NCBI GenBank assembly: GCA_020536535.1
Contig: JAHLWZ010000141.1
Span: 1 to 55,097, forward strand
Direction: 5' to 3'
Length of the DNA: 55,097 bases
Source: Pelomyxa schiedti
Lineage: Eukaryota; Protista; Evosea
Shown here: one piece after another, positions 47,859 to 54,589 of the stretch
Layout of the letters: every line of letters starts with the position of its first letter
Numbering within the stretch: position 1 is the stretch's first letter
Notes under the pieces: generated by a model
The model's input: only the letters and a program-made list of their open reading frames with translations
What the model was told of the DNA's origin: nothing
Databases searched by the model: none
Position numbers and translations under genes: made by a program

Positions 47859-49580
47859 TTAGTAGGCTGAAAGCCAGCGAATAATGTTTATCATAACAGC
47901 AGACCCCAAACAACGCAAAGGGGTGCGGGATTGGTTTTGTCCAAAGCAAGTCATTAGAACCCATACAATTTCCTTGAAAGAGGGTAGCATTATGAAATGC
48001 AACTCTGGGCTCCACATCACTCTCATTACCGCCGTGATACATCTATCAGAGCATGCAAGGTGTTCTATCTGATTGGTTTTTTTTTTTTTTTGATTCAAGT
48101 TATGAAAGAGAGGGAGACTGGACATACCGTGGCATCGGGAATAGGTGGTAATACTATCCTGGTTGAATTGTCTCTCCAAAGTACTATTTGGTTTGAGGTG
48201 GAAGCAACAGCCTGTGTTCTGCTGCAGGCAATATGTGTAAATGGTGGTGTAATTCCGTCAGTTGCATCAGCTGGAAGCCGGTCAATTTTAGCTGGTAGGA
48301 TTGGAGACCCAGTTCTGCCTAGCATATCACCACCCCAGGAGTAAACGTCGCCATCCAGAGACAGTGCAAATGCAGTTCGTACTGAAAAAATAGAGTTTCA
48401 CAGAGTCCTTTGGTTAGGGAATGAATTAATACAGGCTCATACCCGATTGAGCAATGTCAACTACATGCACATCATTCAAGGTTGTTATTGGTACAGGATT
48501 TTCTGCCCATGACATGTTGAACTGTGTGTAGGAGTGCTTGCCAAGCCCAAGCCTTTCTTTGGGTTTGTAATATTTCGATAGGTAAGATTCACCTATATGA
48601 AAAGTCTCTTCCTTGTACAAAAGCTTTCCCTGTTCGTGGATTCCAAAAGAATGTATACGTGTACGCTCCTCCAGGGCCCATATCAGAATAGGAACTGACC
48701 TGAATAAAGTAAGATACAATAAAGAAACCTCTTCTCAAGTAGCACCTTGGACACTCCAGCGGAAATCAAATCAGGGGGCACTGCCTTGCTGTGCCCCACG
48801 GTATTTGTGCAACACATAAATAGTTTTGAACCACCTCTTGTAAGTGGGTTAAAGTTTTTCAGGTTGATTAGTGTACTTGTGCAGTGCAGTCATGTAGTGG
48901 TCCCCGGAACTAATGGATAAAACCGGCGAATTTACGCAGCCATGGGTGGAGACAATATCCAGAGAATGAACTACGTGGATATTATCCTCTTCTCTCCTTC
49001 TACCTGCCAGATAGAACTTGGGGGATTTAGGCTGAGCTATTACAGCCATAAATTGATCAGTTGCTGTCATTGTAATCACAGGTTGCGCTGTAGGTAGCAC
49101 AATTTCACTGGAAGCAAGCAACCCCTATTATTTTGGTATGTTTAGTGCTGTTATCTCCCATCCTCTGTTCTAATTCTAATTTGGTTTTAATAGAAATTCC
49201 ATGCAAACCTCCTCTTCAGCTCTACTCTGCAGTTGCATTGTATATTGGTCGCGCACAGTCGAAAGGGGCATAGGCTCGGCCGGTGCTGGCCAGACAACAA
49301 TCCTGCCACATCCCGATTGTGGGATGCGGTCGCCGCCGTCGTGGGCATCGCCATCCCCTCGTGTCCCATAATTCTCTTCGCCTAGATCCAACAAGGCCGC
49401 CGCCCAACCGTCGTGCGTGCAGCACAGCCGCGACACGCGAGGCCAAGACATAAACGCCGTAGGTGGAGGATTCCCACAATTGAGGCGCCGCTGCGCCCCC
49501 ACCACGCACGCCACCCCGCGGAATCCCCAGTGCCTGAGGGTCGAAGGGTCTGAGGAACCGCCTCCAGTGGGTGCTCCCAT
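47859..49580 (-). CDS. Divergent RCC1-like beta-propeller protein, multi-exon; 3' end approximate
   Basis: Segments VLSISSGDHYMTAL, RLGLG...PVPITTLNDVHVVDIAQS, FALSLDGDVYSWGG...LGR, FTHIACS. ATG at 49580. Confidence 0.65.
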
Positions 49581-49742
49581 AATGTCGTCCACTTCCACAG
49601 TCCCAGTGCCTGTCGGTGCACGTGCAGCCTGTGCAGCCAGTGCGCAATCAACAACGACAACGCAACGCACCATTGAACAACAAAAAAACCCAAAGAAAAA
49701 TTGTTTGTTTCGCTGGAGTGTCGGTTGAAGGGACGTTACGAA

Positions 49743-52700
49743 ATGGGTGATCACTTTAACATGATGATGCTGGGAGACTCTGGGGTTGGGAAAACATGTG
49801 CAATTCTGCGGTAAAGTCTATGTGATTTTGTGTGTTCATTTAAATTGGTTGCGCTAACTGGGAAAAAGATTGTGCCCTCCAAGTGAGAACTACATTCCCG
49901 ACATATGGGAACCTGTACATTTTTTTTTTTTTGTTTTTTTTTGTTTTGTTTTTCCCCCTTTTTTTTTTTTTTATCCTGCCACTAAACAGCCTGTATTTTC
50001 ATTTTTTTATTCTCTACTTTGAAGCCTGGGAAGAGCACTGTTGTTGATGGCAAAGTGTGCTACTTGGAATTGCGGGAAGGGTGAGTTTGTTCCACATACT
50101 GCCTTTTCTCAATGATGCCCAATTTCCAATCCATACAGGTGTGGCTGTGAGGATTATGATAGACTGAGACCTCTAGAGTATATTTTTTTCTTTTTTTTTT
50201 TCTTGTACAACTTAGTGAAGGAATGGCAGGTATCCAGTAATTGACATATTTTGTTTATGCTTCTCTATACAGTGCCGCCCTTCATTTGTCAATGCAACCA
50301 CCAAATGGATACGAGAGATCCGGAAGTTTTGTCCACAGGTAACCATTTCAACGTTTTTAAATACATTAACGTCTTTGATATAAGATTCCCGTCATTCTAG
50401 TTGGAATGAAATCCGATCTGATTGGAGTTATTTCTTCCCAAGAGCAGGTGCTTTATACCATCGGTTTTAGACGCTAATTTCTTACAGACAAATGAACGTG
50501 GTTGGGGCCCACAAGTAAAATTTGAAGAAGGCATTCTTGAAGCTAAGAAAATGCAGGCATATGGTTACATTCAGTGCAGGTGAGCAACAAAAGAGTTTAT
50601 TCAATTGTCTGAATACTTTTACAGTGCAATTACACAAAGTGGACTTGAGCTCCTTGCCAATGAAGCAGTGAGAGTCTGTCGCTTTCCAGTCGAGACTGCA
50701 TCATGGCTCGGTTTTTCTTGGTTATCAAGGACTAACACAGGAGAAACCCAGCAAGAGCTTTCAACAGATCGGACAAGGAAAACTGTCAATACAGATCTTT
50801 CTGTTTGGACAAATCTTGAGCCCAGCATACCGCGGTTGTAGACTTATCATCACATTTTCTCTATTTTAGCTCATATCATCCATTTTGAAACCAGATTTGG
50901 CCATGCTGCTGTGGTAATTGGTCCTATAATGTTCATTCCAGTTTTTACTATTTGAGACATTGATTCCATAAAGGTACATCTTGGGTGGAAGCAATTTTTA
51001 CCACTTGACACAAAACTGTGAGGTTGTGTGGCCTTCTTTTTTGGAGGTACTACTGGCTGATTCACCTGCTCAAAAAAGGTCCTGCGGTTCGATACAGTAG
51101 CAGAGAAATGGCTTCCCTCTATGCCATTGCCAGTTGATTTCTGTGGTACAGTGTTTCCATGTGCAATTGCGCACCTGGGTTCTTTCTTTGCATTTGGTAC
51201 CAATCTCTTATTGGCCTTTAATAACTCTGATGTCTTCTTTTTAGGTGGGAGAAGTTCAAGATATTCCAATCAACTTCTTGTTGGAACACCAGATAGGGTG
51301 GAGTTAGTTTTCTTGCAACCCATAGTGGCCTCTTACATTACATCCTCATATCCAGGCCATATTTGCATATTAAGTTCATCAGCTGTGGGTCGTCTCCCCC
51401 ACCGAGATTTGGTGCTTCAACTGTATCCTATGGAAAAAATATGGTTATATTCGGAGGATTTGACTCTGTTACCAGCGTGCCTTGTAATGATATTTTCTCT
51501 CTTTCTTTTTCAGACTTTTCTTGGAAAACTTTGGTATGCTGCTTTTATTGACATTAGATGTCATGCCCAAATTTTCTTTAGGAACACACTGACCCTTTTC
51601 CTGCACCAAGATACCATCACACTTCTGTATTATTCAAATCCACAATGATAATGTGGTTCTGCTGTGTCGGGTTGAATCAAGACTAAGCATTCCCTCTTTT
51701 TTTTTTTTTTTTATTCAGATATGGCGGACTTGGAGAAACGGGATGGCTTGGTGACCTATGGGTAATTGATCTTGACAAAATGGTCCAAAGTACCATTATG
51801 ATAAATTCCTAAATCTAAAAAAAAAAGTCTTGCGTACCACTACTCACAAGTGGAAATGCCCCACCACCTATGAGAGGACATGCTGCATGTGTCGCTCAAG
51901 GATCCATGTTCATCTTTGGGTTTGACATCCCCCCATTTTTTTGCAGTGGGGAAAAGGAGAAAGAATTATGTTTAACGTAGAAATACAGCTGTGCACAGAA
52001 TAGCTCTGTTGGGAAACTTTTCCGGCTAGCTTTGCACCAGTATGTGTTTCTTTTTTAGAGGAGAGTTCTGAAGAGATTAGATATGTGTGGACAGAAATTT
52101 CTGTTGGGGGCACTCCAATTGGACGAGACTTTCATTCTATGGTGTGCCTCAAAGATCGATTCTTGATTATGTAAGCCACACTTTCTTGGCTATTTCATCG
52201 GACCTATCCTAGATTTGGGGGTCAAATGAGAACCTCCAGAGCAGAAGACGTCCTTGGCGATTGCTGTTCCCTGGATATTGGACCAGGGACACTCGTTTTT
52301 GATGTTCTTCCTGAGGAAATATGGAAAGGTATCACGAAGTACTTGACTTTCATAAAGCCCAAGCTTTTCCTTTCTTGAAGACATTCTACACTACTTGACA
52401 TTTGCGGAGTTAATTCGAGTTTCGCGTACCTGCCGAACACTTCATAGAATTGCTAAAAGTGAGCCGTTGTGGACCAACGCGTACAATGGAGATTGGGGGA
52501 TACCTTCTGTTGATGGAGCACGAATATTTTGGAAGAACTCTACATTTATCAATGGGAAGAAGCCGCCACCAGTAGAGTCCAAGGCCGGTTTTCTTGTATG
52601 TTTTATCCCCTGGAAACATCCTAATGAAAGCAACAACTGTTGTAATTCAGAACTTTCTCAAATTTGGGAATCCTGCTGAACAGTCTGTATGCTTCGGGCC

Positions 52701-53230
52701 ACAATGCACAGTGAAAATGTGGGATGGGTCGCGCAAGAAAATGAAGAACCTTCTTGTTGGAGATGCAGTAGAAACAGGGGACAGGTGCAGAGCCCAAGTG
52801 ATATGCATTTGGAGGTCAGGGGCAGATTGTTATTTAATTAAAAAACAAACTCACTATTCCCAGGAATGTGGTATCTGGACCCACTGGTATAATCACACGC
52901 AGATTTGACAGTAACGATACATTGGAAATAACTCCGGACCACCCGATCCTCCACAATTCCAAATGGGTTCTGCCATCGGCTCTCAACATTCCCACCTGCA
53001 ACCGCGACATTCCATTCCTCTATAACATTGTTGTCAAACCAGAATCCGAGGCCACTCTCACAGCAACAGCCACAACAGTAATGGCAGGTGGGATTATTTG
53101 CAGTACTCTGGGTACACCGGTTCCTGAACCACTCTTTGATCCGTTTTGGAGTTCCAATCAAGTAATTGAATGGTTACATTTGCGTCCAGACTTCCCAAAT
53201 GTTGTCACTACCCCCGCACCTTTCTTGTGA
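49743..53230 (+). CDS. Multidomain protein: atypical Rho-like GTPase - Kelch repeats - F-box - Hint (Vint-type) domain
   Basis: GTPase: GDSGVGKT, YIPD, EDYDRLRPL|YP, KWIREIRKFCP, LVGMKSDL, C|SA. Intron 50835-50894 joins WTNLEPSIPR|FGHAAVVIGPI|MYILGG (Kelch). Further blades PPPRFGAS..IFGG, PAPRYHHT..YGG, PPPMRGHA, PIGRDFHS..FGG. F-box FDVLPEEIWK|DILHYLTFAELIRVSRTCRTLHRIAKSEPLW. Hint: CFGPQCTVKMWDGSRKKMKNLLVGDAV...LEITPDHPI...LYNIVV...GGIICSTLG. Confidence 0.8.
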
Positions 53231-53289
53231 TTGAGAGGAAAGAATGACCCACCATACAAGATACTACAACAATTTTTCCTTTTTTTTTT

Positions 53290-54589
53290 CTATGCTTTAC
53301 CAGACCAAACTGGCACAACATTTTCCATCATAAACTCAGCAACTCCGGGAGGCAGTGATTGATTCAATAACTCCAGGTTGCCTTCCCTTGCGGCATTTCT
53401 CACAGCAGTTGAGCTGATGTCCTGCAAGTCACCTGGTATGAGTGTGATGCCGTTGTTCTTTTGCACAGGCAGGCAGTGGTGGAAGCTGCTTTTAAGAATG
53501 TTCTCCAGCTCTTGTGTGTGACTTGGGCGGCCTAAAACGACCCAGCTGCAATGCGGCCGTGCCCACGCAGAGCACCTCAGCACAACATCAGCGCCATGCA
53601 TTTCTCTCACAGTTATATTCTGGCCTGCGTAGCATACATACATTGATAAGGATAAGAGGGCCATTACGATAGGAAAAAAGGAAAAAAGGGAAGGGGGAAG
53701 GAATAGAATAATATACCAGGAAAATCACGAGCGAGTTGCTTTTCTATGAGGTCTCTGGTTTTTCCTCCACTGGCATAACCCCAAGGGCATACATCAATCC
53801 AGGTGGACTGGGAGGCAGCGATTCTGACTGGAATTGGCGACGAAAACAATTCAGAGGGGAGGGAGGTGGGAAGTACTGGCACATCGAATTTCGGGCAGGA
53901 AGGTTGATGAAATCATTGCCCAGTTTGGAGGCAACATACTGATCTGAAGATGGACAAAGAAATCCCCCAACAACCTGTGCATAATTTGGGATGTATCATG
54001 GAAAAAAACAAAGTGGGAGGGAAGGAAAAAAAAGAAAGAGATTTTATATTTCAAAGACAGAGGAACCTTTGTCATACTATCACTGGATTCTATGAAATCC
54101 TTAGCCCGTGCAAACATTTCCAGGTGCATCCTATGTACTACACAAGAATAAAATGGGGTTTACAAAAAAAGGAAAAAGAAAAATACAAGTTCAAAGAAAT
54201 AGAGAGGAGAAAAACATCCACAAGTAACAGCCACAGCCACAGCCACAGCCACAGCAACACAAACCTGGAGCAAATGAGCCTGAGCTCATCAGCACCACAA
54301 GCCGCCACCTTGTCCCTTTGCCCTTGCCCCCGCCCCTGCTCGTGCCGCCACTACCGCACGACGACGACGTGGTGCTGCTGCTGGTGGTGGTGGAGGAGGA
54401 GGACGAAGTGGTGGTGGCGGTGGGGGGAGCGGGAGGGGGGCGCGGGGCCAGGAGGGCGGAGAGGGCAGAGGACAGCTTGGTGGTGGGCACGGGGTGGGCG
54501 CCGGGGTTGGCCTCCGTGTTGTGTGACCGGAATCCCCTGCCGCCGCCGCTGCTGCTGCCGCCTACGTAGCGTGGGGGTGCTGCTGCCAT
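53290..54589 (-). CDS. NMNAT: NMN/NaMN adenylyltransferase-like nucleotidyltransferase with low-complexity N-terminal extension
   Basis: RLVVLMSSGSFAP|VHRMHLEMFARAKDFIE (GSFxP-x-HxxH); STWIDVCPW; GAD; DISSTAVR (ISST motif). ATG at 54589. Confidence 0.82.
54229..54255. repeat. (AGCCAC)n hexamer microsatellite within an NMNAT intron
   Basis: agccacagccacagccacagccacagc downstream of the minus-strand GTTTGT donor. Confidence 0.8.

Follow-up and report, generated by a model that had tools for sequence, protein, structure and literature searches.

Can a Hint domain, of the kind that processes hedgehog morphogens, inteins, and a few protist and bacterial proteins, be carried by a putative ubiquitin-ligase adaptor, and if so, what would it do there? 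This question is raised by a gene in a 55,097-nucleotide stretch of DNA (positions 1 to 55,097 of contig JAHLWZ010000141.1, assembly GCA_020536535.1; hereafter the window) from Pelomyxa schiedti, an anaerobic amoeba of the Archamoebae. With the encoded protein (KAH3766495.1, here P0001; 783 amino acids, annotated as 'rac gtpase') mapped onto the window, the coding region extends over 22 exons from 49743 to 53230 on the forward strand, to which all coordinates below refer, and ends with a stop codon at 53228–53230 after the C-terminal residues TTPAPFL. An earlier note, made from the sequence alone, had placed an intact-looking Vint-type Hint domain at the end of this gene, on an F-box protein instead of a VWA protein. 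We confirmed that the C-terminal domain of P0001 belongs to the Vint family and is complete and intact in appearance. Taking the favored explanation as a whole, we consider it probable that the gene encodes a cytosolic multidomain protein with a C-terminal Vint-type Hint domain, and that Cys621-dependent cleavage in cis of the Val620–Cys621 bond would release the F-box protein, whose new C-terminus may carry an adduct; the cleavage is proposed from conservation and homology.

The Vint domain covers residues 621–783 (52690–53227) and is interrupted by a single intron at 52815–52863. Its assignment is supported by profile and structural comparisons alike, at levels that chance would not produce. 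The Pfam Vint model (PF14623) scored 53 bits over residues 620–748 (cutoff 27, E = 4.6e-14), and the hedgehog-type Hint model (PF01079) reached 21.5 bits, under its cutoff of 29.7, over residues 616–655 only, that is, the first 40 or so residues of the domain. A profile built from 28 Vint domains matched PDB chain 8r2c, titled 'Crystal structure of the Vint domain from Tetrahymena thermophila', with E = 1.3e-28, and matched the hedgehog chains 6tyy and 1at0 with E values of about 1e-4, 6e-5 among them, aligning both Cys1 and the T-x-x-H motif. An AlphaFold2 (AF2) model of residues 612–783 was predicted with high confidence (predicted local distance difference test, pLDDT, 93.2; predicted template modeling score, pTM, 0.88), and 8r2c was also its top PDB match in Foldseek (E = 2.2e-10, template modeling (TM) scores of 0.79/0.80, and a root-mean-square deviation of 2.4 Å over 168 columns), with Tetrahymena BIL2, many inteins, and hedgehog ranking behind it. 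In AlphaFold DB, the model also matched clusters whose names refer to Vint, Hint, VWFA, or U-box domain-containing proteins, with TM scores of 0.7–0.78. The earlier note had named a search against Hint, Vint, and Hog profiles and a check of the fold as ways to examine its claim, and both returned a Vint domain. When the second Hint exon was used as the query of an exhaustive phmmer search, residues 663–783 of P0001 proved 100% identical to it.

The Cys1 and block-B residues of Hint domains are intact. Cys1, ITPDHP, LYNIVV, and GGIICSTLG, all listed in the earlier note, were found in place in the sequence and in P0001. Cys1 (C621; codon TGC at 52690–52692, in EQSV/CFGP), the presumed nucleophile for an N-to-S acyl shift at V620–C621, aligns with C1 of hedgehog in 6tyy and 1at0, and the block-B motif T685-P-D-H688-P (52931–52945, within ITPDHP at 52928–52945; T685 at 52931 and H688 at 52940) aligns with hedgehog TPAH (T69/H72). 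LYNIVV corresponds to residues 714–719 and GGIICSTLG to residues 737–745; the latter contains a late cysteine, C741 (53099–53101), on the last core strand (positions 128–131 of the model), which is invariant in alignments A1 and A5. Across the 28 Vint domains, the block-B Thr, His, and Pro are invariant and Cys1 is conserved in at least 90%. In alignment A5, which contains 13 F-box-Vint paralogs of 30–56% identity, C621 itself, the C-F-G-P, C-I-W, and T-x-D-H-P motifs, the late Cys, and residues of the C-terminal tail are all invariant.

This tail, roughly 40 residues beyond GGIICSTLG, had been described as standing in place of an intein end. The tail is indeed present (DPFWSSNQVIEWL...RPDFPNVV, residues 754–776, also given as DPFWSSNQVIEWLHLRPDFPNVV), and its conserved part (DPFWSSNQVIEWLHLRPDFPNV, residues 754–775, 53138–53203) forms, in the AF2 model, a helix (149–156) followed by a short strand (163–166; model numbering) that are packed at high confidence. 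It is no peculiarity of this protein, as the motif D/H-P-F-W/F-G-S/T ... V/I ... L ... P-x-F/Y-P is common to the Pelomyxa proteins, the metagenome Vints, the VWA-Vwaint-Vint proteins P0032 and P0013, and 8r2c. Judging from this shared motif, the residues after GGIICSTLG are a canonical part of the Vint domain generally. The domain also ends the protein, leaving no C-extein, and only N-terminal cleavage is therefore conceivable, as had been proposed. An intein reading was rejected on the same grounds, together with the missing terminal Asn.

What does the domain follow? In P0001, a Rho-like GTPase domain comes first, then a Kelch propeller and an F-box, and some 50 residues predicted to be disordered separate the F-box from the Vint domain; Pfam assignments for Ras, Kelch, F-box-like, and Vint all exceed their curated cutoffs. 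The F-box (residues 527–570, 52301–52484, split by a 52-nucleotide intron at 52329–52380) scored 43.7 bits against the F-box-like model (cutoff 24.3, E = 2.3e-11) and 35.8 bits against the F-box model (cutoff 20.5, E = 6.3e-9), and the exon downstream of its intron was recognized on its own (E = 3.4e-9). The linker (residues 571–620, 52485–52689, with an intron at 52596–52650) ends in AEQSV directly before Cys1 and is predicted to be disordered: in an AF2 model of residues 520–783, the F-box is helical, the Vint domain is modeled with confidence, and residues 570–618 between them have pLDDT below 50. The Kelch beta-propeller (residues 227–508, 50830–52246 with introns) matched Kelch_KLHDC2_KLHL20_DRC7 (E = 1.7e-48) as well as Kelch_1, Kelch_3, and Kelch_4, and the Rho/Ras-like GTPase domain (residues 7–174, 49761–50673 with introns) matched Ras (E = 3.3e-22). 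Neither VWA nor Vwaint gave a Pfam hit in P0001 at E values up to 0.01, and both were detected in the controls P0013 and P0032. F-box and Kelch are a common substrate-receptor pairing, and the Kelch-then-F-box order is unusual. By their sequences, the F-box and Kelch parts of P0001 look like the substrate receptor of a Skp1-Cullin-F-box (SCF) ubiquitin ligase. The claim that Vint sits here on an F-box protein instead of a VWA protein was borne out, and the description of the host needs two amendments: its full cargo comprises a Rho-like GTPase, a Kelch propeller, and the F-box, and it is not a singleton.

Indeed, an F-box is combined with a Vint domain in at least 14 P. schiedti genes, four of which encode a Kelch propeller (P0001, P0035, P0004, and P0052) and ten of which do not (P0003, P0005, P0009, P0010, P0018, P0024, P0030, P0037, P0050, and P0051). 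Although these paralogs are only 30–48% identical, all retain Cys1, CIW, T-x-D-H-P, and a late Cys. Three further Pelomyxa Vint proteins (P0008, P0012, and P0053) have other or unrecognized N-termini. In P0008 and P0012, an intact Vint domain follows about 300 N-terminal residues with neither a Pfam match nor a recognizable F-box, and P0053 (990 amino acids) combines ankyrin repeats with a Vint domain that, in a tree, nests beside that of the F-box paralog P0024. P0055, the product of the gene neighboring P0053 on a 146,757-base contig, matches part of an F-box-Vint profile, and the pair may reflect an exchange of domains or gene models that were split or merged. One paralog, P0003, seemed to lack Cys1; this apparent loss is a gene-model error, because the genomic locus encodes EIVCFGAHST... 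in frame. The annotated model of P0003 leaves out the part of the exon encoding EIVCFGAHSTILLANNKECCMKDLEVGD (contig JAHLWZ010000387.1, 1–3172), and this stretch carries two Ras-F-box-Vint genes in tandem, the second copy lying directly upstream of P0003.

In a maximum-likelihood tree of Vint domains, midpoint-rooted for display only, all 17 Pelomyxa domains cluster (support 90/83), 11 metagenome Vints adjoin the Pelomyxa group, and the VWA-Vints fall outside (support 95/93). Because the domains of all 17 Pelomyxa proteins cluster, their sequences fit one fusion followed by expansion under selection.

The combination appears to be new, in that we found it in no other organism and in no paper among those searched, the searches being of limited sensitivity. 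An exhaustive search of representative proteins (34 hits) yielded no F-box-Vint protein from another organism, and word-indexed protein searches with the F-box-Vint region, with full-length members without Kelch (alignment A4, consisting of six Ras-F-box-Vint proteins, P0008, P0012, and one metagenome Vint), and with an F-box-Vint profile returned P. schiedti proteins only, at a limited sensitivity that leaves absence elsewhere unproven. A scan of metagenome DNA with alignment A1 matched 60 patterns and gave no confirmed relative, its sensitivity being too low to prove absence. In the literature searched, neither an F-box-Vint nor a Rho-Kelch-F-box-Vint architecture was described, and Hint and F-box proteins go unmentioned in the publication on the P. 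schiedti genome. One hit, P0011 (1598 amino acids), which carries a Por secretion tail (a sorting domain of the bacterial type), was rejected as a compositional match: a Thr/Ala-rich loop was matched seven times, and no Vint motif was present.

Transcripts support the splicing around the Hint exons. RNA contigs from two single-cell transcriptome runs were compared with positions 49500–53500 of the window, and nine of the 21 introns of P0001 were removed in them. One contig consists of 52486–52595, 52651–52814, and 52864–53260, and thereby connects the final exon of the F-box with the two Vint exons and the 3′ untranslated region, with the GT..AG introns at 52596–52650 and 52815–52863 (49 nucleotides) both removed and both splices in phase. 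The splice across 52815–52863, the one intron that had been proposed to interrupt the domain, was seen independently in both runs, and that across 52596–52650 in one. The three differences between RNA and DNA in the Vint exons (52731, 52737, and 53068) are all synonymous.

How might such a domain act? In hedgehog, C1 forms a thioester with the help of T69 and H72, D46 activates cholesterol, and the acyl group is reported to be transferred to C143, giving a branched intermediate (PMC12054796); Vint proteins, for their part, are expected to be processed inside the cell (PMC2362128). By analogy, we propose that the Vint domain of P0001 would act once and in cis, with T685 and H688 of block B promoting an N-to-S acyl shift that moves the Val620–Cys621 peptide bond onto the thiol of Cys621. 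The acyl group may then pass to the invariant C741, as is reported for C143 in hedgehog, and the thioester would be resolved by a nucleophile, perhaps water, perhaps a thiol, or perhaps a particular molecule that the conserved tail at the C-terminus binds. The predicted products are a 620-residue GTPase-Kelch-F-box protein with a flexible C-terminal tail and a 163-residue Vint fragment, and cleavage would thus constitute an irreversible maturation or switching step for a putative SCF substrate receptor.

Several observations weigh against this proposal. The position of hedgehog D46 is occupied by R662 in P0001, the conserved Arg/Lys of the family motif CIW[KR], in a profile alignment to 6tyy (a D46H variant). 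Cys1 is preceded by Val in most paralogs and by Gly in hedgehog, and a beta-branched residue at this position often slows the acyl shift in inteins. By position only, C741 may correspond to hedgehog C143 and to the intein C+1 residue. In the AF2 model of residues 520–783, the F-box and the Vint domain do not make confident contact, no packing between them being predicted because of the low pLDDT of the linker, and an autoinhibition model is therefore left without structural support. Lastly, the F-box intron at 52329–52380 is retained in the sole RNA contig that crosses it (52213–52489), in which the upstream intron at 52171–52212 has been removed; if the intron is kept, the reading frame meets a stop ahead of the F-box helices and the Vint domain. 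Such RNA may be unspliced or may reflect regulated intron retention. Since no other contig crosses this junction, the full-length frame rests there on homology rather than on RNA; the spliced F-box is backed by the annotated model and by the uninterrupted F-boxes of the paralogs.

The alternatives, in falling order of likelihood, are a non-cleaving 'pseudo-Hint', a hedgehog-like lipidation, and an annotation artifact. Under the first, which we regard as possible though unlikely, the fold would be kept as a binding or scaffolding module, with Cys, Thr, and His retained for a structural role or to sense ligands or redox state. The Val before Cys1 and the basic residue at the D46 position would suit such a module, as would a C-terminal tail conserved in the manner of a binding surface. 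The exact catalytic set of Cys1, T-x-x-H, and the late Cys, however, does not vary among paralogs of only 30–48% overall identity, a pattern expected of maintained chemistry, and Cys1 is the first residue of the fold in P0001, as in active Hint domains. These points favor cleavage over a purely structural role.

Could the domain instead move the C-terminus of the F-box protein onto a sterol or another lipid, creating a membrane anchor that replaces CAAX prenylation? Some features would accommodate this second alternative: the C-terminus is left activated by Hint chemistry (PMC12054796), a conserved tail follows the Hint core at the place of hedgehog's sterol-recognition region, and the Rho-like domain of P0001, being N-terminal, is without a CAAX box. 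Against it, the hedgehog-type Pfam match stays below its cutoff and ends after the first 40 residues, similarity of the tail to the sterol-recognition region was not detected (the hedgehog alignments end at profile position 80), and no result points to a lipid. Moreover, hedgehog-type sterol transfer by the same chemistry is not favored by the sequence, because the cholesterol-activating D46 aligns with a conserved Arg/Lys. We therefore find lipidation very doubtful. The third alternative, that an F-box gene and a separate Vint open reading frame or pseudogene fragment were wrongly merged, might draw on the contig that keeps the F-box intron and on an assembly made from single-cell data, and is scarcely credible and was rejected, given the RNA contig that runs from the last F-box exon (from 52486) through both Vint exons into the 3′ untranslated region by two in-phase splices, the recurrence of the F-box-linker-Vint order at no fewer than 14 loci of the genome, and exons in which the exon map of the window revealed neither stops nor frameshifts.

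With cleavage in cis retained as the preferred reading, P0001 can be set beside the systems it most resembles. The VWA-Vint family was originally defined by an N-terminal VWA domain followed by Vwaint (Burglin, 2008; PMC2362128). P0001 shares with VWA-Vwaint-Vint proteins (PMC2362128; 8r2c) the PF14623 domain, its fold (TM 0.79/0.80), the motif A Cys1, and the motif B T-x-x-H, and in both the C-x-x-L-G strand is followed by the tail, which reads DPFWG..V..L..P.FP in P0001 and HPYLGSQAVVEDLK in 8r2c. In both, the domain is C-terminal without a C-extein, and no signal peptide is apparent by inspection. P0001 differs in its cargo, a Rho-like GTPase with Kelch and F-box in place of VWA and Vwaint, and because these two domains are missing, its gene stands outside the VWA-Vwaint-Vint family (PMC2362128). 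Its subgroup is further set apart from the VWA-Vints by CIW[KR] and T-P-D-H-P, and groups with the metagenome Vints (95/93). The statement in the earlier note that Vint normally follows VWA thus holds for the original definition of the family and is too narrow for the hits, among which Vint also occurs after an F5/8-type-C domain (P0019), after ankyrin repeats (P0053), in U-box-named AlphaFold DB entries, after unrecognized N-termini, and as a stand-alone domain.

Compared with hedgehog and other Hog proteins (HhC; 1at0, 6tyy), P0001 has the same Hint fold, the aligned Cys1 and T-x-x-H, a late Cys at the place of C143 (by position only), and a Hint domain at its C-terminus that would release the cargo on its N-terminal side; it departs from them in its sub-cutoff Pfam Hint score, in the replacement of D46 by Arg/Lys, in having Val rather than Gly before Cys1, and in a cargo that is cytosolic rather than secreted. 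The second-best structural match to the Vint domain of P0001 was to the Tetrahymena BUBL/BIL domains (6y75, 6tmm; TM about 0.50–0.57, identity 13–14%). BUBL/BIL domains flank ubiquitin-like domains, and they and P0001 are alike in being protist Hint domains tied to the ubiquitin system. Unlike P0001, BIL2 has a C-terminal Asn (the crystallized mutant is N143A, according to the PDB title), and the cargo of P0001 is an E3 adaptor rather than a ubiquitin-like domain.

Another parallel is offered by four reported U-box-VWA-Vint proteins (PMC2362128), which, like the 'U-box domain-containing' Vint clusters in AlphaFold DB, link Vint to an E3 ubiquitin-ligase domain. In the U-box proteins, this domain lies at the N-terminus of a VWA protein, whereas in P0001 the F-box lies directly upstream of Vint; the latter arrangement connects Vint with E3 ligases a second time, independently of the first. 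The cargo itself recalls RhoBTB, in which an atypical Rho-like GTPase is likewise joined to a cullin-adaptor module, this being a BTB domain in RhoBTB and an F-box of the Cul1/Skp1 type in P0001. To our knowledge, none of the known RhoBTB or Kelch-type cullin adaptors has a Hint domain.

An apparently active Vint domain, as judged by conservation, stands right behind an F-box in 14 or more expressed or predicted genes of a single anaerobic amoeba, and together with the U-box-VWA-Vint proteins, this family repeats the link between Vint and E3 ubiquitin ligases. If the domain only cleaves, the family is a modest addition to the catalog of domain architectures. It is tempting to speculate, long shot as it is, that Vint endows an SCF-type receptor with a thioester-activated C-terminus that is passed to a specific acceptor, perhaps a lipid anchoring the Rho-like adaptor in a membrane or an amine on another protein, making these a family of 'self-conjugating' F-box proteins that has expanded in Pelomyxa. 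Were such conjugation true, it would represent a new kind of post-translational coupling, in which Hint chemistry is joined to the ubiquitin-ligase system.

Some further observations concern Vint domains outside the F-box family and the GTPase part of P0001. The VWA-Vwaint protein P0013 (880 amino acids) carries two tandem Vint domains (449–624 and 670–849), the second of which is without the upstream Cys1 context in the alignment. Stand-alone Vint clusters of about 175 residues in the ESM Atlas are mostly labeled Nucleocytoviricota, and giant viruses may thus carry free Vint domains. In the GTPase domain of P0001, switch II is atypical. Rac has WDTAGQE at this site, which REGCGCE replaces in P0001 (LELREGCGCEDYDRL, compared with LWDTAGQEDYDRL in Rac; residues 39–71, 50025–50181), so that the catalytic Gln and the Asp of DxxG are both substituted. 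Switch II differs among the paralogs as well, reading WDTMGYDDY in P0004, and these sequences suggest that the GTPase domains of the family are atypical or hydrolysis-deficient.

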